DNA of 64,000 bases from Macrostomum lignano. Taxonomy: Eukaryota. The DNA lies in the NCBI GenBank assembly GCA_002269645.1, contig NIVC01000815.1, positions 237,902-301,901 on the forward strand, written 5' to 3'. The position numbers and the translations under genes are program-made. Of this stretch, positions 170 through 59,213 are shown piece by piece (the first letter of the stretch is position 1; every line of letters begins with the position of its first letter). Under the pieces are notes generated by a model. It had not been told where the DNA came from. It saw only the letters and a program-made list of their open reading frames with translations, and did no database searches.

Positions 170-890
170 ACCAGCAGCAACAAGTCGAACCTGCGATGCC
201 GCGCCGTCAACCTGCAGCAACGGTGGCGACGTCATGGACGACCAGAAACGCTATTTGACCTTCAGCGACATAGCCAGTGGCATCGACCCGGAGGCCACGC
301 CAAATCAAGCTAAATCGGTTGTACGCTCGGAGACCATCGAACTCGAGTCCAGCCTAGATTTGGACAGATATCCGGGCTTAAGCGGCGTCGGGTCAGGCAG
401 TAAAAGTGGCATGCTACTCAAGGACGCCATCATGCGTTGTAGGCGCGAATCCGGAGCTAAAGTTCTCCGTCAGGAGGAAATTTCCTCCTAGGTATCGTCC
501 GCCGACGCGTTGAGCACACCTATCGGTCGAGCTTCCAACTACCGGACGCGTCAATTGTAGCTGTGACTCATCGCGAGGTGTATCACAGCACCGATCCGGA
601 AGTGGAGGTAATCGTTACTCTGGCACAAGCTGCTCCATCTGGTGGGCTCAAAACCAAGATCGGCGATGACATTAGTGTGTCTGAGTTAGCTAGAGAAAAC
701 CGTTGGGCCAGCTTGATGCTCTCTAGCGATGGTTACTATGACGACCAGCTGTGCATGATGCTGCTCGTTGTCACCGGTCGGGCCCAGCGCACCAAGAGGA
801 GACAGTTGTAGAGCCGAATTCATCAGCCGCCGCTGAGGCTCAAGCCGACCCAAATGTTGTTGACAACAACTCTTGCCTCGGAGATTAGCC
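170..890 (+). pseudogene. Coding-like 5' extension of the large ORF at 854-6285, broken by frameshifts and stops (a decaying 5' part or consensus indel errors)
   Basis: A TTTCAG acceptor-like site ends at 169. Protein-like stretches then alternate between frames: 171-491 (ends TAG), 461-811 (ends TAG, same frame as the 854 ORF) and about 742-888 (…HQEETVVEPNSSAAAEAQADPNVVDNNS…). No single frame is continuous. Confidence 0.4.
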
Positions 891-3661: not shown

Positions 3662-6285
3662 CGAAGACAAGTGACGCTGATACAGCTCCTGCGAGCAAGT
3701 CATTAGGGAAAGAAACTCAGAAAAAACCATCTAACAAGTCTCGTAGCTTTAGTGGTAGAAATCGAATCAAGAAAACTACACCTAGCAACAAGCCGGAGGA
3801 AGCTAGGGCTGCTGAGCATTTACAGAAGTCTGTTACTTCACAACCAGTATCGAAAGAGCAAAAGCCCAGGGCATCCGCTGACGACTCGCTGCAATGCTTG
3901 GAAGAGAGCTTTTCAATGACGCTTTCTGCAACACTTCAAGCAGGCCGCTTTGTAACCAGTCATTCCACTAGCAACAAGACAGTTGCTGCGGGCACTGAGC
4001 AGAAATCGGTTCCAGTCCCTAAATCAAGCCAATTAAATTCAGCTGCTGCAGCCACTAAGACATTTGATGATAGCTTTCAACAAACACAAAAAGAGGAGCC
4101 CAAATTTTGCGGTTCGCCATCATCTACCGGCAAGTCTCGAAGCTTTAGTAACAGAATTCGCGTTAAGAAAAGCACACCTGGCAACAATTCAGATGTTAAG
4201 AGCACTGAACAGGTGCAAAAGTTAGTTTCGGTGCCCGGATCTAATGAGTTAAAAGCAAGCGCCACACCCTCCATTGAGGAGTCTTGCAATTCAACAAAAT
4301 CTCAGGGAGACCAGAATCTAGCCGCTGAGAGGCCGAGCAAAAAGGCGATCAAGTCCTCCTTTAGATCTAAGAAGACAACAGGCTCAGTATCACCGACATC
4401 GCCACTAGTTGAAGATGATGGTAAGAAAGCTGATCAGCAAAAGCCCGAACATCAAATGAACTCTATTGTACCGATCGAAGACAACATTGAAGCATTAAGT
4501 TTTTCGCAATTCGCCAGTCTTATGCTTCAATCGCACAGTGATATCGCGATCGAAAGCAGCAATAGCTTGCAGCTGCAGTGTCAGCAGCCGTCTCTGCATA
4601 GATCTCCCTGCAACAGCGCCTGTGCTATGAATGACAGTCTAAAACAGCCGGAGTTAATAGCGTTTGCTACGTCCACCTCGGCACTTAAGCAGAACATCAG
4701 GAACAGTCATGTTGGATCAGTCAACTGCACAGCAGATATTGCTTCCGTTGAGGCGCTATCTTTTGCACCAAAAAGACCACTGCGGCTTTGTAGTCACATG
4801 GAGCCAAGTGTGCTACCAATTGCTACCCCATCGCCAGCAGCTGCCGCAGCTACCAGTCCCACGCCCCAGCCTCGACGCTCTAAATTCAGCCGGCGAAGGC
4901 AGTCACAAAAGAAGCTTAGCAAAACATCATCGCCGTCGTCGTCGCCGTCTGTTGAACGCTCGTCGACTTTACCAACGCCATCTCCATCCTCACCGAAGTC
5001 ACCATCGTCAACGCTGTCTTCGTCATGGCCGGTAACACAGGATGACTCGAAACCCGAAAGTAATCAGCAACAGACGCCAGTCTATTCGCGCCAGGAGACG
5101 GGCGAATTTTATTTGCGAACTTCCGACGGCGAAGAGAATACAGGCGTCGAAGACGACACTAGGTCTTCAGCCGTTGGCGCAGCCGTCACGCCTCTGTCAT
5201 CACTCACTCCTGCTAGTTCGCCAACGCCGTCGCCTTCGCTTCCGTCGCCGACGGGCTTCGCTGGCATTGTCAACAATCCTCTGTCGGCTTCGTCAGATGG
5301 TGAGCTAAAATTTGAAAGCTATATTAAATTAGAACCGAACCTATGTAACCGCTCCTATTTTGTTTCATTAGAATCGGAAGAAAATGACATGGCATCCATC
5401 GGTGACAGCGAACTGTCAGATGCTCGATCCGTTGAGGCAAGCTCCGACAAGCCGATAGAGCGTCAGGGTGCGGCGGCTACGGTAACACCAGCAGCGGCGG
5501 CCTCCAAGTCGCTGCCGCAGCCGCTGCCAGCCGATCCGTTCGGTGCCGGCGCTATCGACTTCCTGCTAGCCTGTTTGAATCGGCGCGAACTGCCGAACCA
5601 GCCAGTGGTCGCGGCCCGATCAAATCCGTATCTCAGTGTGACACCTGTCGCCGCCGCTGGTCCGACAGGCGTCAATCCAGCTGCCTCTGCGTCAATGGAC
5701 GAGCTCAACCGTCGGGCTTATCTGTCCAAGGGCATCGTCGACGTCAAACAGCAGCCGCGTCATCGACGCCGGATTCGTCGACGCCGACACCGGCTTGGCG
5801 GCGGCTCCTACTACCGGCACAGCTCGTCCGCGCTGTCTCTGCTGCGCGAACCGTCCTACCTGGCGCTGGCTCTGTCCATCCGACGCCGGCACGAAACGCC
5901 GTCCCCTAAACGATCAAGAAGCTACGTACGTTACAATACCGAGGATACGGACGAGGGCGAAGCTGACGACGGCGAGGATTTGAATGAGTCGGACGATTAC
6001 GAGGAGGAGTACAGCTACTATCAGCAGCAGTCCTATTACTACGGACAGACGGAGGCAGATCGGCGTGCCCAGGGAGCTCGGCAGCTTGATAAGCAGCGTC
6101 GGGCTCGCTCAATGCCGATTCCCGGACCGGAGGAGGTCGGCGGCGAGGTCGACGGCGAGGAAGCGGCCGGGGCGACGCTGTGGCCGTACGGCCGGCGTCG
6201 TAAACGACAGCGGCGTCAACGTCGCAAAGGTCGACGCGCGGTGTTCCTGTCGGCCGCCAATCTGGTGTACGAGACCAGCCTGTAG
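3631..6285 (+). CDS. Large disordered protein, part 2 (-1 frame relative to part 1), ending in a class I PDZ-ligand-like LVYETSL*
   Basis: The frame is open from 3631 (after TAG at 3628-3630) to TAG at 6283-6285 and overlaps part 1 by 31 nt across CCCCGAAAAAAG. The motif KSRSFS..R.(R/I).KK.TP occurs at both 3736 and 4132, so 3661-3897 is coding even though the ORF track starts at 3898. Confidence 0.72.
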   Translation, partial: YPEKSQSSNLTKTSDADTAPASKSLGKETQKKPSNKSRSFSGRNRIKKTTPSNKPEEARAAEHLQKSVTSQPVSKEQKPRASADDSLQCLEESFSMTLSATLQAGRFVTSHSTSNKTVAAGTEQKSVPVPKSSQLNSAAAATKTFDDSFQQTQKEEPKFCGSPSSTGKSRSFSNRIRVKKSTPGNNSDVKSTEQVQKLVSVPGSNELKASATPSIEESCNSTKSQGDQNLAAERPSKKAIKSSFRSKKTTGSVSPTSPLVEDDGKKADQQKPEHQMNSIVPIEDNIEALSFSQFASLMLQSHSDIAIESSNSLQLQCQQPSLHRSPCNSACAMNDSLKQPELIAFATSTSALKQNIRNSHVGSVNCTADIASVEALSFAPKRPLRLCSHMEPSVLPIATPSPAAAAATSPTPQPRRSKFSRRRQSQKKLSKTSSPSSSPSVERSSTLPTPSPSSPKSPSSTLSSSWPVTQDDSKPESNQQQTPVYSRQETGEFYLRTSDGEENTGVEDDTRSSAVGAAVTPLSSLTPASSPTPSPSLPSPTGFAGIVNNPLSASSDGELKFESYIKLEPNLCNRSYFVSLESEENDMASIGDSELSDARSVEASSDKPIERQGAAATVTPAAAASKSLPQPLPADPFGAGAIDFLLACLNRRELPNQPVVAARSNPYLSVTPVAAAGPTGVNPAASASMDELNRRAYLSKGIVDVKQQPRHRRRIRRRRHRLGGGSYYRHSSSALSLLREPSYLALALSIRRRHETPSPKRSRSYVRYNTEDTDEGEADDGEDLNESDDYEEEYSYYQQQSYYYGQTEADRRAQGARQLDKQRRARSMPIPGPEEVGGEVDGEEAAGATLWPYGRRRKRQRRQRRKGRRAVFLSAANLVYETSL

Positions 6286-17676: not shown

Positions 17677-18477
17677 TGATTGATTACCGAGCGCATTCGG
17701 CGGCAGGCGCGCTGAAATCATTGCGGACCGTCTTGTTGCCAGGCCGGTGTGGGGGGGGGACGTCTCCCGCTTTTAGCGAGCAGAGCGGAGGCGATGTCGT
17801 ATCAGAAAATGGACATTCTTTCTGCATCGCAGCGAGTCCTGAAATTTCGCGAGCAGACAATATTTGCGTCGGGGCCGGTCTTAGCTCTGGGGCTGCCTTC
17901 TTAAAAAGCTTCGGCTCTAAACGATTGATTACTAACAGGCAATGTCTGCTGTTTTTAGTTTCAAAGTGAATGAGGCTGGCGCTGGCGGTGGCGGCGCCTT
18001 GGAATTTCTGTGTGAAGTTCTCCGACTGTCACGCTGTACGGGGAGGAGACGCGCGGACCGCTTCTTAACAATGCGAATCGGGGACAAGGAGGCGCGGACC
18101 GCTACCAAATTGATGGATTGATTTGGTTTTTACCTGCGCCTGCGCTGCCAAAGTGTGTGTGCGCGTGTGTGTGTGGTGTGTGCGCCCGAACTCCTCCTTT
18201 GCCTTCGGATTGAACTGCAAAGGCCTTTTTTTATCGGAGCCTCAGATCAATTGGGGCTGGGTTCTTATTCTTATTAGAAAGCAGAAATTGCTAGAAGCCG
18301 ACGCAGAAGCAGACTGGCCCCAAAGTGGAAGTTTCGATTCTTTCTTTAACTCTCTCTCTCTCTCTCTCTCACTCTCACTCTCGCTCGGCGCTCCCTGAGA
18401 CTGCCTGCCTGCCTGCCTGCCTGCCTTCCTGCCCGCCTGCATGGCCTTCCCATCCCGCTCTGGCCAGTGATGGATGA
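17677..18477 (+). promoter_or_regulatory. Candidate Hox1/PBX/MEIS autoregulatory enhancer
   Basis: TGATTGATTA (17677), TGATGGATTG (18111), TGATGGATGA (18468) and CTGTCA (18026); near-matches at 17063 and 17922. Confidence 0.45.
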
Positions 18478-24072: not shown

Positions 24073-24578
24073 TCAAGTTGACGCCATCAGCTGGTGCGGC
24101 TTCTGCTTCTCGTCCGAGCCGCAGTCTTTGTCCCAGTCTTTGTCGCATACCATCGAGCCGGACGCGACAAGGCCGCTCTTCATCAAGAAGCTGCTCTCCT
24201 TCTGTCGCTTCTTCTGTTTCATTCTACGATTCTGGAACCAGATTTTCACCTGGGTCTCGTTGAGCGTCAGGCTGTTGGCGATCTCAATGCGCCTTGCTCT
24301 CGTCAGGTACTTGTTGAAGTGGAACTCCTTCTCCAGCTCTGTGAGCTGCTTGTTGGTGAAATTTGTCCTGCCGTTGCCGGGGGCCATGAGGCAGTGCGAC
24401 GGTGCCTGCTGGGGGTCGAGGGACAGCGGGCAGACTGGCTGGCGAGAGAGCGGGTGGCAGAGCAGCTGCTGCTGCTGCAGCTCCTGTTGCTGTTGTAGGA
24501 TCTGCTGTTGCTGCTGCTGTTGTTGCTGCTGTTGTTGCTGCTGTTGCTGCTGCTGCTGTTGTTGTTGCTTCTTGCAGT
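24073..24578 (-). CDS. Hox1: Hox1/labial, coding exon 2: polyQ linker, homeodomain (about 24381-24202) and short C-terminal tail
   Basis: [59 protein letters not shown] has the paralogy-group-1 diagnostics ([29 protein letters not shown]). The acceptor TTTTCTCGCTCAACAG (AG at 24580-24579) is in the correct phase and there is no stop between it and the homeobox. Confidence 0.95.
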
Positions 24579-25489: not shown

Positions 25490-26725
25490 GAGAGACGGGG
25501 GAGACGGGTGAGATGGAGAGGGAGACGGGTGAGATGGAGAGGGAGACGGGTGAGATGGAGAGGGAGACGGGTGAGATGGAGAGGGAGACGGGTGAGATGG
25601 AGAGACAGACGGGTGAGATGGAGAGAGAGAGACGGGTAAGGTGGAGAGAGAGACGGGTGAGATGGAGAGGGAGACGGGTGAGATGGAGAGAGAGACGGGT
25701 GAGATGGAGAGAGAGAGACGGGTGAGATGGAGAGAGAGACGAGTGAGATGGAGAGGGAGACGAGTGAGATGGAGAGGGAGACGAGTGAGATGGAGACGGA
25801 GACGAGTGAGATGGAGACGGAGACGGGTGAGATGGAGACGGAGACGGGTGAGATGGAGAGGGAGACGGGTGAGATGGAGACGGAGACGGGTGAGATGGAG
25901 AGGGAGACGGGTGAGATGGAGAGGGAGACGGGTGAGAAGGAGAGGGAGACGGGTGAGATGGAGAGGGAGACGGGTGAGATGGAGAGGGAGACGGGTGAGA
26001 AGGAGAGAGAGACGGGTGAGATGGAGCCGGAGACGGAGACAGGGACAGGTGAGATGGAGATGGAGACGGGTGAGATGGAGAGGGAGACGGGTGAGATGGA
26101 GAGGGAGACGGGTGAGATGGAGAGGGAGACGGGTGAGATGGAGAGGGAGACGGGTGAGATGGAGAGGGAGACGGGTGAGATGGAGAGGGAGACGGGTGAG
26201 ATGGAGAGAGAGACGGGTGAGATGGAGAGGGAGACGAGTGAGATGGAGACGGAGACGAGTGAGATGGAGACGGAGACGGGTGAGATGGAGAGGGAGACGG
26301 GTGAGATGGAGAGGGAGACGGGTGAGATGGAGACGGAGACGGGTGAGATGGAGAGGGAGACGGGTGAGATGGAGAGGGAGACGGGTGAGAAGGAGAGGGA
26401 GACGGGTGAGATGGAGAGGGAGACGGGTGAGAAGGAGAGGGAGACGGGTGAGAAGGAGAGAGAGACGGGTGAGATGGAGCCGGAGACGGAGACAGGGACA
26501 GGTGAGATGGAGATGGAGACGGGTGAGATGGAGAGGGAGACGGGTGAGATGGAGAGGGAGACGGGTGAGATGGAGAGGGAGACGGGTGAGATGGAGAGGG
26601 AGACGGGTGAGATGGAGAGGGAGACGGGTGAGATGGAGAGGGAGACGGGTGAGATGGAGAGGGAGACGGGTGAGATGGAGAGGGAGACGGGTGAGATGGA
26701 GAGGGAGACGGGTGAGATGGAGAGA
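25490..26725. repeat. Polypurine minisatellite, 21-bp unit (GAGACGGGTGAGATGGAGAGG)
   Basis: Direct inspection; explains the ETGEMER ORF. Confidence 0.97.
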
Positions 26726-27133: not shown

Positions 27134-29375
27134 GTCAGACCCCACAGATCAACACAGACACTCAGTTGTTGATCTCGCTCAGACCCCACACACAGACACT
27201 CAGTTGTTGATTGCTCAGACCCCACACACAGACACTCAGTTGTTGATCTCGCTCAGACCCCACACACAGACACTCAGTTGTTGATTTCTCAGACCCCACA
27301 CACAGACACTCGGTTGTTGATCGCTCAGACCCCACACACAGACACTCAGTTGTTGATCGCTCCGACCCCACACACAGACACTCGGTTGTTGATCGCTCAG
27401 ACCCCACACACAGACACTCAGTTGTTGATTGCTCAGACCCCACACACAGACACTCAGTTGTTGATTGCTCAGACCCCACACACAGACACTCAGTTGTTGA
27501 TTGCTCAGACCCCACACACAGACACTCAGTTGTTGATTGCTCAGACCCCACACACAGATACTCAGTTGTTGATTGCTCAGACCACACACACAGACACTCA
27601 GTTGTTGATTTCTCAGACCCCACACACAGACACTCAGTTGTTGATTGCTCAGACCCCACACACAGACACTCAGTTGTTGATTGCTCAGACCCCACACACA
27701 GACACTCAGTTGTTGATCGCTCAGACCCCACACACAGACACTCAGTTGTTGATCGCTCAGACCCCACACACAGACACTCAGTTGTTGATCGCTCCGACCC
27801 CACACACAGACACTCAGTTGTTGATTGCTCAGACCCCACACACAGACACTCAGTTGTTGATCGCTCAGACCCCACACACAGACACTCAGTTGTTGATTGC
27901 TCAGACCCCACACACAGACACTCAGTTGTTGATTGCTCAGACCCCACACACAGCTACTCAGTTGTTAATTGCTCAGACCACACACACAGACACTCAGTTG
28001 TTGATTTCTCAGACCCCACACACAGACACTCAGTTGTTGATTGCTCAGACCCCACACACAGACACTCAGTTGTTGATTGCTCAGACCCCACACACAGACA
28101 CTCAGTTGTTGATCGCTCAGACCCCACACACAGACACTCAGTTGTTGATCGCTCAGACCCCACACACAGACACTCAGTTGTTGATCGCTCCGACCCCACA
28201 CACAGACACTCAGTTGTTGATCGCTCAGACCCCACACACAGACACTCAGTTGTTGATTGCTCAGACCCCACACACAGACACTCAGTTGTTGATTGCTCAG
28301 ACCCCACACACAGACACTCAGTTGTTGATTGCTCAGACCCCACACACAGATACTCAGTTGTTGATTGCTCAGACCACACACACAGACACTCAGTTGTTGA
28401 TCGCTCCGACCCCACACACAGACACTCAGTTGTTGATTGCTCAGACCCCACACACAGACACTCAGTTGTTGATTGCTCAGACCCCACACACAGACACTCA
28501 GTTGTTGATCGCTCAGACCCCACACACAGACACTCAGTTGTTGATCGCTCAGACCCCACACACAGACACTCAGTTGTTGATCGCTCCGACCCCACACACA
28601 GACACTCAGTTGTTGATTGCTCAGACCCCACACACAGACACTCAGTTGTTGATCGCTCAGACCCCACACACAGACACTCGGTTGTTGATCGCTCAGACCC
28701 CACACACAGACACTCAGTTGTTGATCGCTCCGACCCCACACACAGACACTCAGTTGTTGATTGCTCAGACCCGACACACAGACACTCAGTTGTTGATTGC
28801 TCAGACCCCACACACAGACACTCAGTTGTTGATTGCTCAGACCCCACACACAGACACTCAGTTGTTGATTGCTCAGACCCCACACACAGATACTCAGTTG
28901 TTGATTGCTCAGACCCCACACACAGACACTCAGTTGTTGATTGCTCCGACCCCACACACAGACACTCAGTTGTTGATCGCTCAGACCCCACACACAGACA
29001 CTCAGTTGTTGATTGCTCAGACCCCACACACAGACACTCAGTTGTTGATTGCTCAGACCCCACACACAGACACTCAGTTGTTGATTGCTCAGACCCCACA
29101 CACAGACACTCAGTTTTTGATTGCTCAGACCCCACACACAGACACTCAGTTGTTGATTGCTCAGACCCCACACACAGACACTCAGTTGTTGATTGCTCAG
29201 ACCCCACACACAGACACTCAGTTGTTGATCGCTCAGACCCCACACACAGACACTCAGTTGTTGATTGCTCAGACCCGACACACAGACACTCAGTTGTTGA
29301 TTGCTCAGACCCCACACACAGACACTCAGTTGTTGATCGCTCAGACCCCACACACAGACACTCAGTTGTTGATCG
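27134..29375. repeat. Minisatellite, 36-bp unit (CTCAGACCCCACACACAGACACTCAGTTGTTGATTG), about 62 copies
   Basis: Direct inspection; explains the 749-aa QTPHTDTQLLIA ORF. Confidence 0.97.
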
Positions 29376-30034
29376 CCCATGCCAGTAGATCAGCTATAGA
29401 AGAGGCTGACAGTATTGCAGGCAGCCTCATCAAGAAAATTCCCGACTTAAAGCCATACAGAATTATAAATCAGAGCTCTCAGCCCCAGCTCTCCCTTGAT
29501 CCCTTCGTGCCCCCTTCGCCAAATTGACAGAGCAAACTTTGGCCGCTTTAAGTCTGTCTCCCCCACCCAGGACGCAGCTCCATATACAAGAGCGAGGGCA
29601 AACAAGTGGGGGACAACACACTCATGCACCAGAGCAAACCCATATGAGGATTAGAAAGTGTAGGACCCCAACTGAAATTATTAATTCTGAATGAGCTGCA
29701 TAACCAAACCCAAACCCCTCCTCCGGTCCTGCGCCCTGCACACCTGAGGAATCATGCGCAATATAAGCTCGGGAAGCTGAAGGGGATGCAGAATGGCATC
29801 GGGGGATGGAGATCAGCCACTCACTCCCTCCCATTTTCCAACGATCCCAAACTCGCTCGCTCCCCCTCTCGCCGCGAAGGTAAACACAGATATATTTTAG
29901 TCCCCCTTCGAGAGCTGCGATGTCCCGCATTCTAACGAAAAAGCGACGAAGAAAGAGGAGACTCGCGAGGGGCTGCCCCAGCCTTAGAAAAGGTAGAGAC
30001 GCCCATATCATTGTCTCAGTAGTTTTGCCCCAAT

Positions 30035-30870
30035 CTCATGGGAAAGTCTCACCCAGGAGATCTCATGGTTGATGGCTGCCATTCTCATGGGCAAGTCTCA
30101 CCCAGCAGATCTCATGGTTGATGGCTGCCATTTCCATGGGCAAGTCTCACCCAGCAGATCTCATGGTTGATGGCTGCCATTTCCATGGGCAAGTCTCACC
30201 CAGCAGATCTCATGGTTGATGGCTGCCATTCTCATGGGCAAGTCTCACCCAGCAGATCTCATGGTTGATGGCTACCATTCTCATGGGCAAGTCTCACCCA
30301 GCAGATCTCATGGTTGATGGCTACCATTCTCATGGGCAAGTCTCACCCAGCAGATCTCATGGTTGATGGCTGCCATTCTCATGGACAAATCTCACACAGC
30401 AGATCTCATGGTTGATGGCTACCATTCTCATGGGCAAGTCTCACCCAGCAGATCTCATGGTTGATGGCTGCCATTCTCATGGACAAATCTCACCCAGCAG
30501 ATCTCATGGTTGATGGCTGCCATTCTCATGGGCAAGTCTCACCCAGCAGATCTCATGGTTGATGGCTGCCATTCTCATGGGCAAGTCTCACCCAGCAGAT
30601 CTCATGGTTGATGGCTACCATTCTCATGGGCAATCTCACTCAGATCTCATGGTTGATGGCTGCCATTCTCATGGGCAATCTCACCCAGGAGATCTCATGG
30701 TTGATGGCTACCATTCTCATGTGCAAGTCTCACTCAGCAGATCTCATGGTTGATGGCTGCCATTCTCATGGGCAAGTCTCACCCAGCAGATCTCATGGTT
30801 GATGGCTGCCATTCTCATGGACAAATCTCACCCAGCAGATCTCATGGTTGATGGCTGCCATTTCCATGGG
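30035..30870. repeat. Minisatellite, 49-bp unit (CTCATGGGCAAGTCTCACCCAGCAGATCTCATGGTTGATGGCTGCCATT), about 17 copies
   Basis: Units start at 30035 and 30084; each carries an ATGGC-T-GCCAT mini-palindrome. Confidence 0.96.
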
Positions 30871-32387
30871 CTGACAAAAACAATGCTTTTTCCTACAGCA
30901 AATATCCCGAAGGAATTCAATTAACTTCGCGCAATAACAATTGCAAGAAGCGGGTCCTTCACTCACTCGGGGTCTTCACTGTTATCTCTGGTTTGCAATT
31001 GTTGCATTCTGACTCCGCACTAGACTAGGGGGGGGGGGGGTGGTCAGAAGAATTCTGATAAATTCTTACATTCTAAATTTATTGCTTCTTCTGCTCTGAG
31101 GTAATAAACAGAGCTAAACTGTAGGATATTTGTTTCTGATCTTATTTCCACACCTGCCTTTGGGATGTTGTAAGTCCATTGTTACACTTGCTACTAAATT
31201 CCCAAGCAGCCTTTGCCCCCTTCTACAGTTCTTGTTGACCCTCCCCCCCATTAAGCTCGAACGATAATTTATTGATGAAGAAGAGGAGTCAGAGGAGCTT
31301 TGTCCTTTCTGATTAATGCGGATCCACTTATGCCATAGGGGGGCATTGGGCCACCTTCCCAAGCCTCCCGCCTTCAGGCGCCACTTCATAATTTTTCTGC
31401 ACAAAAGTTTACCCAAAGAGTCCCTGCAGCCGAAGTAGCGAATGCAATGAGGGAGGAAAGAGGCGGAGGGGGGGGCAGCCAGTGCCAGCAAAAGATGGCA
31501 TAAAGATTTATGGTAGGTGCGCTCCGAGCGGCGCTTCAGAAAATGTTTTCGCTCGTTCTTATTTTTCCAATATAAGGCTCCGACCGGCCTTTCCAGGTAG
31601 GGTATAGCATTGCATATTTTCGGTTAGCCGTATTGTTAACAATATAAGCGTATCAAACCGCGGTGACTTCAGGTGGGGTGGGGAGAGGCAGGGCAAGGCC
31701 AGGTAAGGGAGCGAAACATCTGTCAACAAGCAATAAATCAAAAGTATTCCGTATTCAATAGCGTATATAGAATATCTCTCTGTGTATAGGCCTGGCAGTT
31801 GAAGTCCAGCCTGGGGCTGCAGTTATGATATATATATTTGAAACTGATAATTACATGGACGGGGGATATTAAAATCTTTCGTAGGGGAGGGGGGTGACTG
31901 TATAGGCCAGTCTGTCCCCAACAGTTTTTCATTTTCACCCACCGGTTTAATACTCATAAGTGCGAAGTTCGAGTCACGGGATGCGAGCTTGCTCACGAAC
32001 TGCTGGGGGGGGGGGACACCTCGCCATGTGGCGATCCAATATTTGACAAGTGAGAGCTGCCCTGATTTCTGGGCTCTGCCGCCCGTGGGAACAAACTCGA
32101 TCTGGTCTGCTGTCCGACTCCCGGAGAAATGATGAATTGTTGCAATTAAATTTGGATTTTATCCCTCGAGGAACTTTCGAGCTGCTTGCAGTTGGCAAAG
32201 GGGAGAAAGTTTTTTTTGCTTTCATTTTATATCCCTTGACCCGAAAGCTGGTGGCCAGATTAAATATTTGTGAGCAAGAAAGCGGTCTGACATTGCAGAT
32301 GTGGGCACAATTTTGATTTTCTAAATTTCATCAAGCAAGTCAAACTTGGCGCTTCGAGACTGCTTGTCGAAAAATGTTGAAAGCAAA

Positions 32388-33343
32388 TAAAAACACAACA
32401 AAGGTTCAGGGTCTCCCTCAGATAAACACAACAAAGGTTCAGGGTCTCCCTCAGATAAACACACAAAAGGTTCAGGGTCTCCATCAGATAAACACAACAA
32501 AGGTTCAGGGTCTCCCTCAGATAAACACACAAAAGGTTCAGGGTCTCCCTCAGATAAACACACAAAAGGTTCAGGGTCTCCCTCAGATAAACACACAAAA
32601 GGTTCAGGGTCTCCCTCAGATAAACACACAAAAGGTTCAGGGTCTCCCTCAGATAAACACACAAAAGGTTCAGGGTCTCCATCAGATAAACACAACAAAG
32701 GTTCAGGGTCTCCCTCAGATAAACATACAAAAGGTTCAGGGTCTCCCTCAGATAAACACACAAAAGGTTCAGGGTCTCCCTCAGATAAACACACAAAAGG
32801 TTCAGGGTCTCCCTCAGAGAAACACAACAAAGGTTCAGGGTCTCCCTCAGATAAACACACAAAAGGTTCAGGGTCTCCCTCAGATAAACACACAAAAGGT
32901 TCAGGGTCTCCCTCAGATAAACACACAAAAGGTTCAGGGTCTCCATCAGATAAACACACAAAAGATTCAGGGTCTCCATCAGAGAAACACAACAAAGGTT
33001 CAGGGTCTCCATCAGATAAACACACAAAAGGTTCAGGGTCTCCCTCAGATAAGCACAACAAAGGTTCAGGGTCTCCCTCAGATAAACACACAAAAGTTTC
33101 AGGGTCTCCATCAGATAAACACACAAAAGGTTCAGGGTCTCCCTCAGATAAACACACAAAAGGTTCAGGGTCTCCATCAGATAAACACACAAAAGGTTCA
33201 GGGTCTCCCTCAGATAAGCACAACAAAGGTTCAGGGTCTCCCTCAGATAAACACACAAAAGTTTCAGGGTCTCCATCAGATAAACACACAAAAGGTTCAG
33301 GGTCTCCCTCAGATAAACACACAAAAGGTTCAGGGTCTCCATC
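32388..33343. repeat. Minisatellite, 33-bp unit (AAGGTTCAGGGTCTCCCTCAGATAAACACACAA), about 29 copies
   Basis: Direct inspection. Confidence 0.97.
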
Positions 33344-33455: not shown

Positions 33456-35758
33456 GAATTCAGGACTGCAAGCACTTCTGTTGGCCACTTGTAATAGCTT
33501 CAATAATGTTTGCACTGCATAGCGCTTATACAAACTTTGATACTGAATGGGCACTTGGCCTATCTATTTAGCATCGCCATTACAATTGTTTGTTGCTATA
33601 CCGTGGCTTCTGGTTGGTATATAGTAAGCACAGGATTGGGCCCGAACGCAATCCGAAAATGTTAGTTATACAGTTTGGCTTCGACTACTTTTTTTGGTCG
33701 GAGGAGTTTCGTTTTCGTCTTCGGTGCAGACTGCCGGACCTGTTGCGTCAGTCAGGACCGGGGTTGGCATTCCGAACTGAAGGGTCTTCTTGTCTGGCAA
33801 TCTGTTGCCTAGGCCTGGGGCGATATACTAGGAAACCCATTACAGAAACCTTGAAACTGACAAACTGTGCACATTGCTAAGACTCCCTACAGGTTCTGTG
33901 TATCTTGCCCCCCCCCCCTTATCAGGCTTCCCATTGCTTGTTTACTAGGTTAGTATCTGCATTCCACTGACCGGAGGTGCCGTATCCAAAATATGCCACC
34001 GATTTAGTTGGAGACGCACGGAGGAGGTCGAGCCCGCGGCGAATGTGGGGATAAATATTATGACTATCAGGCCCTATTAAGGTAACTGCGGTAAGCCATG
34101 TAGGGTTTATCACTCTTCGAGCCGGCTTAGCAACTATTAGATAACATGACCGGTGCACAGGATGCACACTTATAGTATACACAACCACCATTACCGCTAA
34201 TTGTTAATTGTTATACAATGGTCTGTCAGTCCTGATAGTCCGTTACGCAACCAAAGCCTTGTGTGTTTACAAAGAGGCCACAGGCTGCTTGCCTGGCCAT
34301 GGTGTTTTTTGTTACTGCCTTTGCCGGACAAGCGCGGGTAATTGGCTGTCAGGCAGAAAGAAACGAGAAAAAAGGAAGCCTGGAGGTTGGACGTCCTTCT
34401 TGAAGACGGAACGTCAAGAGAGGCAGATGAAGGCAGCCCCCCCCCCTCCCAAGCAACTAAAAATTGCAGCCCAACACCGCAAACAAACTTATAATAGCTG
34501 CATGGGATCATCTTTGACAAAGAAATTCTCCCAAAAAAACGTCTTGATTATATTGATGATGAATGAGTTCGCTGGTTTGCTTGATAATTACCATGATCTG
34601 CTGCTATCATGCAGGGAAGCTTTGCTGACTGGTATATAGTAAAATTTCACCTTCGTTATATGATCTTTAGTATAGCTTCAGGTAAAAATGAGCAAAGTTG
34701 TGACCCTAAAACTGAATAAATTAGCTTCAGGTAACTAAGTGACTTGGTTCCGCAGTGACACCCCTGAAAGAAAATCGAGATTTGCCTTCTATGCGCATGT
34801 AAGTTGTGCAGAGGTGTCAAAGCAAAAAAATTACCCACGTAAAAACTCGCCTCCCCCTGTTGTCATGCGCAGTTGACATGCGGCAACTTGCCGGAAATCG
34901 CTGGTCCATGACTGGCGCAGTTCCATTTATGCTGCTCAACTGCTCAAGCTCAACCATCCTACAGACTCAAACACCATCCTTTCATTTCAGCCTTGGCAAC
35001 TACGGGAAGGTGACTGCTCAGTGAAGTATATAAATGCATCTTGTATGCAGGCAAGTACTCGAGTGCTAAACCCCAGGAGACTATAGAAATCATAACACAA
35101 AATGACTCAGGAGCCATCAACTTATCGCCGTGTTGAATCGCCCTCGAAAGAAAGACGCGGATTTGGGCAACTCCCAAGCAACCCCTTCCCCCCCCCCCTG
35201 CTTTGAGCACAGAAACCCGACGGAGCGCAACTGAGCCCCTGGGAATCTCCTTGATTCTGAGAGCGAGTCCTGATCCCCACAAAAAAGATGCGGAGAGAAA
35301 TAAAGAAGCTTTATAAGAGAGGAAAGTTGGCAGCTTTCCCTCTTCGCTTAAGCCTGCGCCCCGCGCGCTTGATCGGTCAAGCGATTAAACATCAGCTCAC
35401 TACCAGCGGAGTCATATAAGGCACGGATCTTGGCGTGTTGTTGGAGATAGCTTCCTGCATGGCAGCAAACGGCAGGTGTCAGGTGTAGGAAATCCCCCAG
35501 AGACCCTGATTTTGTATTTAGAGACTATAAGATTAGCATTAAAGTTCAGTACATAGTAGATTGCACACCCTGTGTCAGTGCAGTGGTGCCATTGTGCTGA
35601 GTATAAGCTACTCGTATGTGTATAAACTTCAGGGATCAGTCAGTCAGTGACAGTTGGGCCCCTCGGAAAGCGTTAACGTTATCCAATTAAGGGATGGAAC
35701 TTTCTCTACATTCTTGGCAGCAACACGACAGCAGAGAGAGAGCCAAATAATGACTTAC

Positions 35759-36692
35759 CTTTGCCGGTTGCCTTCGGCTGATGCCGCTTGATCTCCATCC
35801 ACTTGAACGGTGGCGATCCGCCGCTCTCGCCTCCGCCAAGAACGCCGCCGCCGCCTCCGCTGCTGTTGCTGCTGTTGCTGCTATTGTTGTTCGCGTTGGC
35901 TTTGCTTCTGCTTCCGGAAGCATGCGCAGTTGCCGTTGCACTGCCGCCGCTGATGCCGCCGCCAACGCCGACTGACGTTCCGCAGACCGGCGACGGGCTG
36001 ACGCTGAGTTCGCTGCTGCTGCCGCCGCTCGGGCTGTGCGGGCACTGGTGCAGCAGGTGCTGCTGCTGCTGCAGATGCTGCGAACCCGTTGAATAGCAGT
36101 TGATGTCGCCGCCGCCGCCGCTGCTGCCCCATAAAGAATTCACGGCGGCAGTGCCAACCGCGGATGCTGGCGTAGATTCCTGCTTGATGTAGGCAGCGGC
36201 TGCCGCCGCTGCGGCCGCGGCTGCCGAAGCTGTTGAAGGATACTGCTGCTGCTGACACTGGGAATAGTACTGCTGCTGCTGCTGCTGCTGATGCAGCACC
36301 GGCTGCTCCTGATGCTGCAGGTACAGACCGTAGGGTGAATTTATTTGATGGTGCTGCTGCTGCTGCTGGGGATGCTGGGGATGAAGATGATGCTGCTGAT
36401 GAAGCTGCTGCTGTTGGTGATGAGTCTGGAAGGCGGCGGCTGTATGATAAGCAGCGGTAGCTTTCGTAGCTTCTATCAGCGATCCCGGATGTTGTTGATA
36501 AGCCAAGCTATCCAGGTTGCACAGCGAGTAGCCACCAGCTGCACCTCCCGAGTTCATCATTCTCAAAGCGGCAGCTGTGGTCTTGCTGTCACCGCTGCTC
36601 CTGTCACTTACGCCAATGTAAGAAGCGCCTGAGTAGCCTGTAATAATACTGTTGCTGCTGCTGCTGTTGTTGGGGCCAAGGACTCCGGCCAT
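35759..36692 (-). CDS. Hox1: Hox1/labial, coding exon 1: Q/H/A/G/S-rich N-terminus and the PBX-binding hexapeptide PFKWMEIKR
   Basis: GC-rich ORF starting at ATG 36692. FKWM at 35807-35796 resembles the PG1 hexapeptide (T-F/Y-x-W-M-K-V-K-R) and is followed closely by a consensus donor. Confidence 0.92.
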
Positions 36693-36856
36693 AGACTGAC
36701 AGAGGGGAAACTGCGCTTAAGTCAGCTGTGAGAATCTTAATTTGAAGGATTGATTTGAATCTTTTTTTGAGAACCGATTCCCGCGGCCGCTAAAATGGAG
36801 GGAACGCCAAAGTTTGAAAGTGACGGACTCTCCTCTCTCCACCTCTCCCTCCCGCC

Positions 36857-36973
36857 ATTGGCGGGCGCATTTCTGTCCAATAAGAACTGCGACCCATCGG
36901 CTCCCAAAATTCCTAAAGCCCACCCTTTTTGGCCCCCTTTTTTCCCGCACCGAAAGGAAACTTGCCAGCCAAT
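36857..36973. promoter_or_regulatory. CCAAT-box cluster upstream of Hox1
   Basis: ATTGG at 36857, CCAAT at 36877 and CCAAT at 36969, 165-280 nt upstream of the ATG. Confidence 0.4.
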
Positions 36974-37055
36974 TATTTGGAAGGCCAGCCCCCCGAAAGA
37001 GAGAGAGGAGAAGAGAAATATATTAGCCAAATGTGGCGGCCAAGTCGGAAGCCTT

Positions 37056-37501
37056 TGATTTATGACGGGGGCCCCCACCTCAGCCCGCAACCTCTGGGGC
37101 GGCGCCAGGCGATTGTAGGCGTTTTTGAAAAAAAGCTAGCTGGGCGCGGACTATCAAACTGATTTACGACTGGCTAGCGGCCTCCAAGTCAAGCCAAGCC
37201 AGGAATATAAATACACATTTTTACCAATGCTGCATTGAGAATGTTATATTAAATCAAATTGTAATTCATTTAGCTGTCGGCGGCTCCCCCAGCCCGATGT
37301 GCGCCGTCTCTCTAAGCTTTTTCAATCTCTTTAATGCTATCATTGCGAGCATTTTGAGCTGCACAAAAGCTTGTATACACGCAGTCTGACAGTCAGCGAT
37401 ATTTTAACTTGGCTATTGAAACACAGCAAGCGGGAGTTGGTCGGTGGGTTTGGGTCGGCCAGCGGCTGCTGCCAAGCTTTAGCTGGGGTAGTCATAAATC
37501 T
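37056..37501. promoter_or_regulatory. Three posterior-class PBX-HOX composite sites plus a MEIS site upstream of Hox1
   Basis: TGATTTATGAC (37056-37066, +), TGATTTACGAC (37160-37170, +), AGATTTATGAC (37501-37491, -) and TGACAG (37387-37392). Confidence 0.55.
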
Positions 37502-37694
37502 CTGCCGACTGCCGCTTTTTTGTTCGCTTCCTCTGCCGCCGTGGTGCGAACAGCAAGGGCCACGGATACCCGGCCTTCAGGCCTTGCGGGGCTGTGCGAG
37601 TGCTGCATGGCCTGTGCGTTGCATTTAAAGAAAGTGTTGTGCATGCTCTAACTAACCTTTGCTCCATTTACAATATTTTATTGGTTCTTATCAA

Positions 37695-38163
<469 letters not shown>

Positions 38164-45270: not shown

Positions 45271-46548
45271 ATGAGCAGCCGGAGATATCCGTACGCTTCG
45301 TCCGTGTCCTCGGCGGAGTCCAGAGACTACAGGCGGCACAGGCGGCGGCAGGCCAAGCAGCAGAAGCAACTGGCTCTGCCAGACAGCCCTTGCCAGCTGC
45401 AGCACCAGCGCCAGCACCAGACAGATGCCGCTCCTACTCACGAGGTTCACGTAAACTATGACGACCGGCTCTACCGGCTGACGGGACTTGAGCAGGCGGC
45501 CACGTGCCAGGATTTGATCTTCGCCCTGCTGTGGTTCCGCAGCTTGCACAGCAGGCGGAAACGCCAGCAGACTCAAAGCCAGATGGAGCGCCAGGAAGCT
45601 GAGCTCATGGCCGAGGCCGTCAAGCACGAGCTGGTGATCGACTTTCCAGGCAGAGTGAAGCGGGTTCGCGGCCACCTGCCGGTGCTGCGACTCCTGACTC
45701 ACCTGCGTCGGCGAGCGAACGGGCGGAGCTTCCAGCTGCGGGTTCGTCAGCGGCGATCGGTGGCGATGCTAGCCGCGGCTGCGGCCGCTTCCACAGCCGC
45801 TGAAGAGGAGGAGCGGTCGCTGGAGCTGCGCATTGTCGACTGGGGACCCGGCGACGAGCGGTGCGGACGGCATTGGCGCAATGAGCAGGCGGCGGCCGTG
45901 GCGGCGGCGGCGGTGACTAGGGGAGGCGCATCGACCAAGAACAGCAGCACCAGAAACGGCGGTGACGGCTGCGGCGGCGAAGACAGCGGTGGAGGCGGCG
46001 GAGGGCTGGACCCAGCCGACAAGGCCCTGATGCTGGAGTGGATGCGGAAGCTGAACTTCCCGGTCGATCGCTTTGACGGCAACGCCGACGAAAGCGGGGG
46101 CCGCGACGGTGACGGCGGCGGGTGCAGCGGCGGCAGAGTGAAAAGCCTTCAGGTCAGCTTTCGGCATCAGACGCGTCGACGCGTGTTTAAAGCGTCAGCT
46201 TTGCCACCCGACGTCGAGGACGATGATGACGAAGACTACGTAGAAGAAGACGACGTCGACGATGACGATGCGGACTTCGGCAAAGAAGAATTCCAAGGCG
46301 AGCAGCGGCGTCAGGCGCAGAGCAGTTGCTACTGCCTGCCAAGCGTCGTGGTTGCCGGCCGTCGAGACGACAGCAGCGACACCGGGGTCGACTGTCTGAC
46401 GCCGTCAGATTTAACTGGTACCGCTGGTGCCGCCGCCAGCGAGCTGACCGCCGTGAAAAGTTTGCCCGACAGTGAGAATGCGTGCCGAACTCAGTGCATT
46501 ATCGAATTGGATTGGCCGGATTTTGCCTACATCGCTACTCCCGTCTGA
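45271..46548 (+). CDS. Intronless Ras-association (ubiquitin-like) domain protein, N-terminal RASSF (RASSF7-10)-like, 425 aa
   Basis: EVHVNYDDRLYRLTGLEQAATCQDLIFALL resembles, from memory, the N-RASSF RA start (E.xVxVD..xR.V.G.T..TTCQ.V..AL). An insertion follows, then HELV…LPVLRLL…FQLRVR. The late DDSSDTG motif recalls the RASSF9/10 DSDTG tail. The ORF is GC-rich and uninterrupted. Confidence 0.75.
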   Translation: MSSRRYPYASSVSSAESRDYRRHRRRQAKQQKQLALPDSPCQLQHQRQHQTDAAPTHEVHVNYDDRLYRLTGLEQAATCQDLIFALLWFRSLHSRRKRQQTQSQMERQEAELMAEAVKHELVIDFPGRVKRVRGHLPVLRLLTHLRRRANGRSFQLRVRQRRSVAMLAAAAAASTAAEEEERSLELRIVDWGPGDERCGRHWRNEQAAAVAAAAVTRGGASTKNSSTRNGGDGCGGEDSGGGGGGLDPADKALMLEWMRKLNFPVDRFDGNADESGGRDGDGGGCSGGRVKSLQVSFRHQTRRRVFKASALPPDVEDDDDEDYVEEDDVDDDDADFGKEEFQGEQRRQAQSSCYCLPSVVVAGRRDDSSDTGVDCLTPSDLTGTAGAAASELTAVKSLPDSENACRTQCIIELDWPDFAYIATPV

Positions 46549-51700: not shown

Positions 51701-53940
51701 ATCTAGTCTCAATCATAGAGGAATAGAATGGATTGCTAATCTATTCTCAATCATAGATGAATAGAGTGGATTGCTAATCTAGTCTCAATCATAGAGGAAT
51801 AGAGTGGATTGCTAATCTGAATCATAGAGGATTAGAGTGGATTGATAATCTAGTCTCAATCAAAGAGGATTAAAGTTGATTGATAATCTAGTCTCAATCA
51901 TAGAAGAATAGAATGGATTGCTAATCTAGTCTCAATCATAGAGGATTAGAGTGGATTGCTAATCTAGTCTCAATCATAGAGGATTAAAGTGGATTGCTAA
52001 TCCAGTCTCAATCATAGAGGATTAGAGTGGATTGTAATCTAGTCTCAATCATAGAGGAATAGAGTGGATTGTAATCTAGTCTCAATCATAGAGGATTAGA
52101 GTGGATTGTAATCTAGTCTCAATCATAGAGGATTAGAGTGGATTGCTAATCTAGTCTCAATCATAGAGGATTAGAGTGGATTGCTAATCTAGTCTCAATC
52201 ATAGATGAATAGAGTGGATTGCTAATCTATTCTCAATCATAGAGGAATAGAGTGGGGTGCTAATCTATTCTCAATCATAGAGGATTAGAGTGGATTGCTA
52301 ATCTAGTCTCAATCATAGAGGAATAGAGTGGATTGCTAATCTAGTCTTAATTATAGAGGAATAGAGTGGATTGCTAATCTGAATCATAGAGGATTAGAGT
52401 GGATTGATAATCTAGTCTCAATCAAAGAGGATTAAAGTTGATTGATAATCTAGTCTCAATCATAGAGGAATAGAATGGATTGCTAATCTATTCTCAATCA
52501 TAGATGAATAGAGTGGATTGCTAATCTAGTCTCAATCATAGAGGAATAGAGTGGATTGCTAATCTGAATCATAGAGGATTAGAGTGGATTGATAATCTAG
52601 TCTCAATCAAAGAGGATTAAAGTTGATTGATAATCTAGTCTCAATCATAGAAGAATAGAATGGATTGCTAATCTAGTCTCAATCATAGAGGATTAGAGTG
52701 GATTGCTAATCTAGTCTCAATCATAGAGGATTAAAGTGGATTGCTAATCCAGTCTCAATCATAGAGGATTAGAGTGGATTGTAATCTAGTCTCAATCATA
52801 GAGGAATAGAGTGGATTGTAATCTAGTCTCAATCATAGAGGATTAGAGTGGATTGTAATCTAGTCTCAATCATAGAGGATTAGAGTGGATTGCTAATCTA
52901 GTCTCAATCATAGAGGATTAGAGTGGATTGCTAATCTAGTCTCAATCATAGAGAATAGAGTGGATTGCTAATCTATTCTCAATCATAGAGGAATAGAGTG
53001 GATTGCTAATCTATCTCAATCATAGAGGATTAGAGTGGATTGCTAATCTAGTCTCAATCATAGAGGAATAGAGTGGATTGCTAATCTAGTCTTAATCATA
53101 GAGGAATAGAGTGGATTGCTAATCTGAATCATAGAGGATTAGAGTGGATTGATAATCTAGTCTCAATCAAGAGGATTAAAGTTGATTGATAATCTAGTCT
53201 CAATCATAGAGGAATAGAATGGATTGCTAATCTATCTCAATCATAGAGGAATAGAGTGGATTGCTAATCTAGTCTCAATCATAGAGGAATAGAGTGGATT
53301 GCTAATCTGAATCATAGAGGATTAGAGTGGATTGATAATCTAGTCTCAATCATAGAGGATTAGAAGTGGATTGCTAATCTAGAGGATTAGAATGGATTGC
53401 TAATCTAGTCTCAATCATAGAGGATTAGAATGGATTGCTAATCTAGTCTCAATCATAGAGGATTAGAGTGGATTGCTAATCTAGTCTCAATCATAGAGGA
53501 TTAGAGTGGATTGCTAATCTAGTCTCAATCATAGAGGATTAGAGTGGATTGCTAATCTAGTCTCAATCATAGAGGATTAGAGTGGATTGCTAATCTAGTC
53601 TCAATCATAGAGGATTAGAGTGGATTGCTAATCTAGTCTCAATCATAGAGGATTAGAGTGGATTGCTAATCTAGTCTCAATCATAGAGGAATAGAGTGGA
53701 TTGATAATCTAGTCCCAATCATAGAGGATTAAAGTGGATTGCTAATCCAGTCTCAATCATAGAGGATTAGAGTGGATTGTAATCTAGTCTCAATCATAGA
53801 GGATTAGAGTGGATTGATAATCTAGTCTCAATCATAGAGGATTAGAATGGATTGCTAATCTAGTCTCAGTCCTAGAGGAATAGAATGGATTGCTAATCTA
53901 GTCTCAGTCCTAGAGGAATAGAATGGATTGCTAATCTAGT
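48762..53940. repeat. Satellite array, 38-bp unit (AGAGTGGATTGCTAATCTAGTCTCAATCATAGAGGAAT), about 135 copies, with higher-order duplication
   Basis: Unit starts at 48765 and 48803. Diagnostic variants recur exactly 684 bp (18 units) apart. Confidence 0.98.
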
Positions 53941-57645: not shown

Positions 57646-59213
57646 ACAACAAATACAACAGAATACGCGTTCAGCGTCACAGGCGCGAACGAACGCCACG
57701 CCGCCGGCCGAATCCGCAGGCAGTCGACGAAACGCCGAGTGCGCGCCTGCCCCTGCCGGTAGGGTCCCTGCAGCGTTAGCAGCAGCACCTCCTGCATCGG
57801 CTGTGGGCAGTACGACTCGGCGCGGATGATGTGGCCTGCCAGCTGGAGTCGCCGACGGCGCAACAGGTCGCTTGGACGGACCAGGCCGGCGCGGTGATAC
57901 AAAGCCGCGTTGGTCACTCGCTCGTAGCCGATCTTGAAGGCGTCGCGCAGCAGGCCAGCGTGCGCCGCGTCAAATTTTGCTCGAGCGACTCCGTCAGCGT
58001 CCAGATCTCGGCGTTGTACGAGCGTACAGCAGGACGGTCTCGATCACCGCCTGGAACAACGCCGCCATCTGGCGGTCAGGTAAGGTCTCGGACTGCAGGA
58101 CTGCCTTCACAGAACGAAAGGCAGCCCAGGCAAGCCCGCGGACGCCAGGAACCAGACCACCGAGGTACTCGTAGACGAACTGCTGACAGCGCGGGAACTC
58201 CGTCACCTGTCCATCAGCGCCTCGGCACAAAATCGCAGCTTTGATGTCGTCCGGCACGCAGAGCACGACGGTCTTCTGCGTGTTGACCACCTGGCCGACA
58301 CTCGCCGCAACAACAACAAGCTTGTCCAGTTGTCGCTGGGCGCCCTCGACAGTTGAGGACAGCAGGGCGAGATCATCGGCGTAGCCAAGCACGCTGAGCC
58401 GCCTCTCCGGTTGACGTCGACCCACGCGTCGCCGCAACAGAAAGCCGTCGTCGTTGGTAGGAAGAGCGATCCGCAGCACCCAGTCAAGCGCCAGAACGAT
58501 CAGAAACGGCGCAAGCGTATCTCCCCGAAGCACCCCGGAGGATGTCTCAAAGAAGTCCGATAGGCCGTCCGGTGTTGAAACAGCAGCTTTCGTATCACGG
58601 TACATCACCATGATGGCGGAAATCAGCCGCTCTGGGACGTTGTACACACGAGCACCTTTGGGAGCACAGACCTGACGAACAAATCGAATGCCTTCTTGAA
58701 ATCTATAAAGATAACAATCAGGAACAACTGGCGTGTCCGCGCCTCCTCGATGACTCGGCGAAGAGCCAGGATTTGCGTCACTGTGCCGCGATGGGGCCGG
58801 AAGCCGTTCTGCTTAGGACGGCGACCTCGCTGTCCACAAAGTGGATGCGTAGCGCCTCGATGGGCACCTCGTCGAGACCCAGTGCTTTCCCACCGGGTGA
58901 CTGTTGGCTCACAACGTCGGCTGTGCTGACTGGTGTGCTGACTGGTGTTAGGCTGAAACTCTCTTCTGCCGGCAACGGCATCTCCGGCGGCAGCGTCAGA
59001 CTGTCTGGCAGCCGGGGTGGCGGCGCGTTGACAATGGCGGCGAAGAACTCACGCGTTCCTGCGCTTGTCCGCAGAGTCGTCTGCCAGGTTGAGCGGAATA
59101 CACCGCTTTCGCCCCAGGTTGATAGCCGACCAGGCACGCGACCTCTGGCATCGGGTCCAGCGGCAGAGACGGCCCAAACGGCGTCATCAACAGCAGCAGC
59201 CCAAATGACGTCA
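57646..59213 (-). mobile_element. 5'-truncated, internally deleted, frameshifted non-LTR retrotransposon (RTE-like LINE) reverse transcriptase fragment
   Basis: Across frames it reads KALGLDEVPIEALR, QNGFRPHRGT…FIDFKKAFD, SGVLRGDTLAPFL, LGYADDLAL, YLGG and RRRRLQLAGHIIR. Flanking TGATCAAATGCA (57634-57645) and TGATAAAATGCA (59214-59225) match 11/12 and are a candidate TSD. A degenerate ACAACAAAT-type tail starts at 57646. Confidence 0.92.

Follow-up and report, generated by a model that had tools for sequence, protein, structure and literature searches.

How region-specific Hox expression is achieved after the break-up of a Hox cluster is a wide question, and flatworms are a prime case. The 64-kb stretch of Macrostomum lignano DNA analysed here (the window; contig NIVC01000815.1 of assembly Mlig_3_7, GCA_002269645.1) raises it for a single gene. 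It contains a Hox1 gene, and a preliminary description had picked out three closely spaced PBX-Hox sites upstream of the start codon, which it assigned to the posterior class. Is such a cluster fortuitous, or could it be a regulatory element, and by which proteins would it then be read?

The Hox1 gene and its upstream island

The gene next to the sites has two exons on the minus strand (Table 1) and belongs to the labial/Hox1 family. Its homeodomain is 95% identical to that of Drosophila Lab, exon 2 matches the Pfam Homeodomain profile (3e-22), and the best full-length protein matches are Hox1/labial proteins of molluscs, brachiopods, phoronids and annelids. Exon 1 carries the hexapeptide FKWMEIKR and ends with the hexapeptide region (PPFKWMEIKR). 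An exon 2 acceptor at 24434 (431 aa) was replaced by the one at 24578, which yields a product of 479 aa and so fits the annotated length. The motif found at the N-terminus of spiralian Hox1 proteins (MNSDNDYTLCNLDS; MNSDNDYTLCNLDSH...; molluscs, annelids, brachiopods) can be aligned with MMNSGGAAGGYSLCNLDS (MMNS..YSLCNLDS), residues 45-62 of the M. lignano ORF. Labial-type homeodomain, hexapeptide and spiralian N-terminal motif are all present, in agreement with the earlier identification of the gene as Hox1. It had also been called isolated; it is indeed the sole homeobox gene in the window, and M. lignano has been reported to be without a Hox cluster (bioRxiv 10.1101/058669).

Since the conserved spiralian N-terminus begins only at residue 45, the true start codon may be codon 45 at 36560, 132 nt downstream of the annotated ATG. 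The latter may add a lineage-specific extension of 44 residues or may sit in the 5' UTR. A donor-like GTAAGT lies at about 36614-36609.

Table 1. Features of the M. lignano Hox1 locus (window coordinates) and of the conserved block upstream of mollusc Hox1 genes (coordinates of the fetched loci).
Feature	Position	Strand	Remarks
Hox1/labial exon 1	35759-36692	-	annotated ATG 36692 to GT donor (GTAAGT) after 35759
Hox1/labial exon 2	24073-24578	-	homeobox 24205-24372; stop 24075-24073
Non-repetitive island, 1 kb	36693-37693	-	between Hox1 ATG and (GATA)n array; presumed promoter/proximal regulatory region
CCAAT boxes in island	36857, 36877, 36969	-, +, +	
Site 1, TGATTTATGAC	37056-37066	+	PBX (TGAT) + class 3 Hox (TTTATGAC) composite; antisense to Hox1
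Site 2, TGATTTACGAC	37160-37170	+	antisense to Hox1
TGACAG, MEIS/PREP-type hexamer	37387-37392	+	distance to site 2, 216 bp; to site 3, 98-103 bp
Site 3, AGATTTATGAC	37491-37501	-	same orientation as Hox1
(GATA)n microsatellite	37694-38163		117 copies, 470 bp; distal boundary of island
Mollusc Hox1 upstream block	L004:9780-10000, L006:9790-10000, L007:9790-10000, L008:9790-10000, L009:9690-9910		

The locus is dense in mini- and microsatellites (24465-47514 and elsewhere), and unique regulatory DNA is restricted to small islands. The Hox1 intron (11.2 kb) is full of minisatellites, with at least four long arrays (25499-26724, 27152-29373, 30030-30871 and 32391-33340), and GATA, 31-mer, 16-mer and 15-mer arrays fill most of the 8.5 kb from Hox1 to the next gene. 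Two long ORFs without a Pfam domain, annotated as hypothetical proteins, flank Hox1 (854-6285 and 45271-46548, both on the plus strand; Mlig006135 and Mlig027618). Over 35271-56548 the window is identical to contig NIVC01000815.1, and a neighbouring ORF has 99% identity to an M. lignano protein. The 90% cluster of the neighbouring 425-aa ORF also includes TEAD and RING-domain proteins, neither of which is encoded in the window; their presence is probably artefactual, through fused gene models or the clustering. On the minus strand, an ORF fragment (57994-58647) has a reverse-transcriptase domain (RVT_1, E = 6e-8) and probably represents the decayed remains of a non-LTR retrotransposon.

Between the annotated ATG and the (GATA)n array lies the non-repetitive island that contains all three sites. 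This is the place where regulatory input would be expected; reporters driven by proximal regions of up to 2 kb give correct patterns in M. lignano (PMC5730564). The sites could also lie in the 5' UTR or in an unannotated upstream exon. An RNA gene in the region was considered and dismissed, as there is no Rfam match anywhere in the 64-kb window. No tandem array overlaps the island, and as a repeat it has no second copy in the window or in the fetched loci.

Three composite sites in 446 bp

All three 11-mers of the preliminary description were recovered at their places and on their strands, the starts of the first two being 104 bp apart as described. The distance to the start codon, given there as 360-810 nt, is 364 nt for site 1 and 809 nt for the distal end of site 3 when counted from the annotated ATG; a start at 36560 would shift the sites to ~496-941 nt upstream. 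In each site the PBX half-site directly abuts the Hox half-site, which is the arrangement that defines a composite class 3 site. The 8-mer cores are TGATTTAT, TGATTTAC and AGATTTAT, with TTTATG in two sites and TTTACG in one, and GAC follows on the 3' side in all three. Site 3 shares the 10-mer GATTTATGAC with the others and has A instead of T at the first PBX position.

The sites account for every copy of GATTTAYGAC in the 64-kb window (three, both strands counted), and these fall within a single stretch of 446 bp. The shorter TTTAYGAC occurs five times in the window, three of them in the cluster upstream of Hox1. Within the 1-kb island, the generic PBX-Hox pattern [TA]GATNNA[TC] matches the three sites and nothing else.

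The preliminary description had raised the possibility of a dispersed repeat. Neither the window nor the fetched loci show the island as repeated DNA, and resemblance between the sites is confined to ~14 nt or less; they do not belong to a repeat. Of 14 positions, 12 are identical in sites 1 and 2 (TGATTTAYGACNGG), with no agreement further out, and sites 1 and 3 are 100% complementary over 10 nt in inverted orientation. An origin of the sites from a repeat or transposon was rejected because the arms measure 10-14 nt and show no extension, target-site duplications or extended inverted repeats; for sites 2 and 3 in particular, a transposon or inverted-repeat origin was rejected on arms of 10 nt that do not extend. 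A word GGC(G/C)(G/T)CCAAGTC is found at 37035-37046, 10 bp upstream of site 1, and again at 37179-37190, 9 bp downstream of site 2, and the 104-bp spacing of the starts of these two sites corresponds to ~ten helical turns. Both the flanking word and the helical spacing may be coincidence.

A TGACAG had been described as lying between the sites, and it is present between sites 2 and 3. A role as partner MEIS/PREP site is not supported here: the hexamer is adjacent to no site and has 109 copies in the 64-kb window, and thus carries no statistical weight. Because of this frequency and its distance from sites 2 and 3 (Table 1), we do not count it in the candidate element, outside which it probably lies.

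Chance expectation of the cluster

With the real base composition and both strands counted, the 11-mer is expected 0.02-0.07 times and the 10-mer GATTTAYGAC 0.09-0.27 times per 64 kb; the value of one per 2 million positions per strand given in the preliminary description is right for uniform composition (4^11/2). For a motif treated as prespecified, three 10-mers within 446 bp are expected 2e-8 to 5e-7 times per window, and the same cluster within the 1-kb island 3e-10 to 8e-9 times. Matches with at most one mismatch are not significantly enriched over the whole window (4 observed versus 2.0 expected from shuffles). The unusual part is the clustering and exactness of the sites, not the number of near matches.

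A second calculation sets a limit to this result. Of the dinucleotide shuffles made from the island, 7.7% also have a three-fold occurrence, inside 450 bp, of some 10-mer family with a single free position, and the significance of the cluster therefore depends on the identity of the motif, that is, on its being prespecified and relevant to a Hox gene. That some word recurs is commonplace; the remarkable fact is that this word is the optimal PBX-Hox site and stands at a Hox promoter. The judgement that the cluster is unlikely by chance holds for a prespecified motif (~1e-7 per window) but not for recurrence alone (~8% of shuffles). Allowing for a look-elsewhere factor of 1e3-1e4 recognisable motifs, we infer a probability that is still below ~1e-4. 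In addition, GA precedes all three of the clustered TTTAYGAC 8-mers and TGA two of them, and the chance of a shared dinucleotide is ~0.004. A three-site cluster of this kind is very unlikely to have arisen by chance.

Class of the sites and candidate binding proteins

The optimal HoxA9:Pbx1 site obtained by PCR site selection is ATGATTTACGAC, in which TGA is assigned to Pbx and TTTACGAC to HoxA9; the preference in vivo is TTTA(T/c)(G/T/A)(A/g/t) (PMC6532930). A closely similar 12-mer, ATGATTTATGAC, serves as a Ubx site in EMSA (PMC7069958). These 12-mers are in vitro optima of vertebrate and fly proteins, from which flatworm Pbx and Hox preferences may differ; read with that limit, site 2 agrees with the HoxA9:Pbx1 optimum at 11 of 12 bases, site 1 with the Ubx site at 11 of 12, and site 3 with these optima at 10 of 12. 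The 3' GAC of the M. lignano sites is found in both optima. The 5' A of the 12-mers is replaced here by T, C or G and is kept in none of the three sites. Only the TGATTTAC variant, that of site 2, is one that we take to lean towards Hox9/10 and Abd-B.

SELEX-seq has divided Hox-Exd complexes into three classes: TGATTGAT is the preferred site of class 1 (Lab, Pb), TGATTAAT that of class 2 (Dfd, Scr) and TGATTTAT that of class 3 (Antp, Ubx, Abd-A, Abd-B) (PMC6689074, PMC8374599). When a single base change creates TGATTTAT, a reporter becomes active in every trunk segment (PMC6689074). The term posterior-class used in the preliminary description is thus supported by the match to the optimal HoxA9:Pbx1 site but is too narrow, because a class 3 core suits central Hox proteins as well. 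By sequence, the sites are of a central-plus-posterior class and not specifically posterior. Since ATGATTTATGAC is a Ubx site and TGATTTAT is read in all trunk segments, central Hox proteins of the Lox5/Lox4 type are as good candidates as one of the Post2 type.

Comparison with other Hox1 loci

Another contig of the same assembly, reached through the neighbouring 425-aa ORF, carries the 5' region of Hox1 and the adjoining gene a second time (NIVC01002777.1:24555-45832), with all three sites retained. Compared with window positions 35271-37700, this copy has two substitutions in 2.4 kb (35506 and 36792; 99.9% identical) and differs in microsatellite length. Chromosomes are duplicated in DV1, the line that was sequenced, so that near-identity is as expected (PMC5730564). 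With only two SNPs in 2.4 kb, retention of the sites in this copy is uninformative about constraint. No Macrostomum relative of Hox1 was found in the protein database by full-length search, by a search with low-complexity-masked exon 1 or by exact look-up of the exon 1 ORF; the full-length search returned distant Hox1 proteins only, with no N-terminal similarity. An unrelated TEAD locus, to which the 425-aa ORF also led, is without the motif.

Individual sites of related sequence do occur upstream of mollusc Hox1 genes. In Patella these are TGATTTATGAa (-1108 relative to the ATG) and TTTATGAC (-979); the scallop locus carries four partial sites in the interval from -803 to -441, and in Gigantopelta TTTATGAC is found at -318. 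That TTTAYGAC might be a feature of the region near the ATG was suggested post hoc by these three loci, and the test was fixed before Haliotis, Mya, Dreissena and Rotaria were added. One of these four further loci passed (Haliotis, AGATTTACGAC at -280). None of the seven mollusc and rotifer Hox1 loci has a comparable cluster, and matches with at most one mismatch are at chance level in each; we therefore claim no conservation across phyla. The triplet seems to be confined to the Macrostomum lineage; at the least, molluscs and a rotifer do not have it.

In the same mollusc loci, a conserved block of ~230 bp lies directly 5' of the Hox1 ATG in both gastropods (Patella, Haliotis) and bivalves (Mizuhopecten, Mya, Dreissena) (Table 1). 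Its motifs include a labial-class TGAT(G/A)GAT (reverse complement; TGATGGATGG in scallop), a CCAAT box (GATTGG), CACGTG, CTAAT..TGTCA and (T/G)CGTAATT, together with TTCATTTATTT(C/T)AGATT(T/C)ATCT, GACAG..AATTT and TTGACA(G/A). The block may be a Hox1 promoter or an autoregulatory module, and is evidence that sites of homeodomain/TALE type can be under strong constraint in the Hox1 promoters of spiralians. It shares with the M. lignano island a position immediately 5' of a spiralian Hox1 gene and the presence of homeodomain-type motifs (AGATT(T/C)ATCT, GTCGTAATT, TGACAG); unlike the M. lignano triplet, which repeats one class 3 optimum, it consists of single sites of several classes, the labial class among them. 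Alignment scores between the mollusc block and the M. lignano upstream region lie inside the shuffled null. Two of the mollusc gene models are doubtful: the first exon of the Gigantopelta Hox1 model (L005:10001-10056) is not next to the conserved block, and the annotated Dreissena start (L009:10001) lies ~90 nt downstream of the conserved MMNSE start.

Discussion

On balance we favour a model in which the cluster of three high-affinity composite (T/A)GATTTAYGAC sites is a Hox/Cdx cross-regulatory element at the promoter of an unclustered Hox1 gene. A PBX/Exd-type TALE protein would sit on the (T/A)GAT half-site, and the abutting TTTAYGAC would take a class 3 homeodomain partner, namely a Hox protein of the central or posterior groups (Lox5, Lox4 or Post2 type); alternatively, Cdx could bind only the TTTAYGAC part. 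The other axial homeodomain proteins present in a cell would then govern the transcription of Hox1. Occupancy of the sites, the identity of the binding protein and the choice between repression and activation are features that we infer from sequence. The element would be of a known kind, and as a candidate it is credible, well placed and experimentally tractable.

Cdx and Hox9-13 proteins have GTCGTAAA- and GTCATAAA-type motifs in common, and TTTAYGAC could in principle be bound by a Cdx or Post2-type monomer without PBX, the upstream GA being incidental. The assignment of TTTACGAC to HoxA9 and the TTTA-based preference in vivo (PMC6532930) are consistent with such binding, as is the retention of Cdx in M. 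lignano, which other flatworms have lost (PMC4815179). But a monomer model does not predict that GA is shared by all three sites, and TGA by two, in direct contact with the Hox half-site, and we think this explanation unlikely. The sharing of the PBX half-site beyond what a monomer site needs also speaks against the view that a word has merely recurred by coincidence in a 1-kb GC/AT-mosaic region, has no regulatory role and was noticed because its consensus is known. That view draws on the recurrence of 10-mer families in shuffles of the island, on the absence of enrichment of near matches in the window, on a second M. lignano copy too similar to give conservation support, and on distant Hox1 loci that are without the cluster. 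Against it stand the low expectation for a prespecified motif, which survives the look-elsewhere factor, and the fact that the motif is the one site class with an a priori link to Hox genes; we regard simple coincidence as improbable. If the sites were not conserved, or not functional, the finding would be only a striking coincidence.

A third possibility is that Hox1 acts with Pbx on its own promoter and so maintains its expression, as a flatworm counterpart of the vertebrate Hoxb1 and Drosophila labial elements. In the Hoxb1 autoregulatory element, a PREP/MEIS site accompanies three PBX-Hox sites located a few hundred bp 5' of the gene. The layout in M. lignano resembles this element, and the Drosophila labial elements, in that bipartite PBX-Hox sites are clustered 5' of Hox1 with a TGACAG in the vicinity, and the labial-class TGAT(G/A)GAT conserved ~190 bp upstream of the mollusc Hox1 ATG indicates that such elements exist in spiralians. 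However, the M. lignano cores are TGATTTAY (class 3), whereas those of the Hoxb1 r4 and labial elements are TGATGGAT or TGATTGAT (class 1), and it is TGATTGAT that Lab and Pb proteins prefer (PMC6689074, PMC8374599). Neither class 1 core is found in the island (36693-37693); in the rest of the window such cores lie in minisatellites or at a distance (17677-18468, 25184, 39521, 40172, 48003 and 51877-53183). Unlike in the known elements, no PREP/MEIS site is closely linked, the TGACAG being a common hexamer remote from every site, and the M. lignano element is a candidate read from sequence. The homeodomain of M. lignano Hox1 is of the canonical labial type, and there is therefore no reason to expect an altered specificity. 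Sites of the wrong class for Hox1 and an island free of class 1 cores thus argue against autoregulation in the style of Hoxb1 and labial, which we consider distinctly unlikely. The reader of the sites is likely to be another Hox protein.

Cross-regulation of this sort is familiar from other animals: Ubx represses Antp, Hoxc9 represses brachial and anterior Hox genes, and Cdx feeds into Hox genes. As in these cases, a class 3 Hox or Cdx protein would act in M. lignano on the regulatory DNA of a more anterior Hox gene; unlike them, where the genes are clustered and genetic and ChIP data support the interaction, M. lignano Hox1 is unclustered and its proposed regulation is read from DNA. Repression, and with it posterior prevalence, is reasonable by analogy with Ubx on Antp and Hoxc9 on anterior Hox genes. 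Most characterised PBX-Hox elements within Hox loci are activating. In planarians, the anterior Hox genes are hardly restricted along the axis, and expression of hox1 is seen in nerve-cord neurons along the length of the cords (PMC4815179, PMC8602322). Given the prevalence of activating elements and this weak axial restriction, activation is as possible as repression.

With scattered Hox genes, M. lignano would have no use of cluster-level mechanisms, and we speculate, with considerable doubt, that collinear-like regulation has been rebuilt gene by gene, the triplet allowing posterior or central Hox proteins or Cdx to set directly a posterior limit or level of Hox1 expression. M. lignano is, as far as is known, the one flatworm in which transgenesis is routine, and short proximal promoters work in it (PMC5730564); a compact candidate element of 450 bp with three unambiguous sites is for these reasons unusually tractable. 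If this reading is true, the three sites upstream of Hox1 would form the first defined Hox cross-regulatory element in Platyhelminthes, a phylum for which we know of no defined Hox cis-regulatory element, and one amenable to transgenesis in M. lignano.
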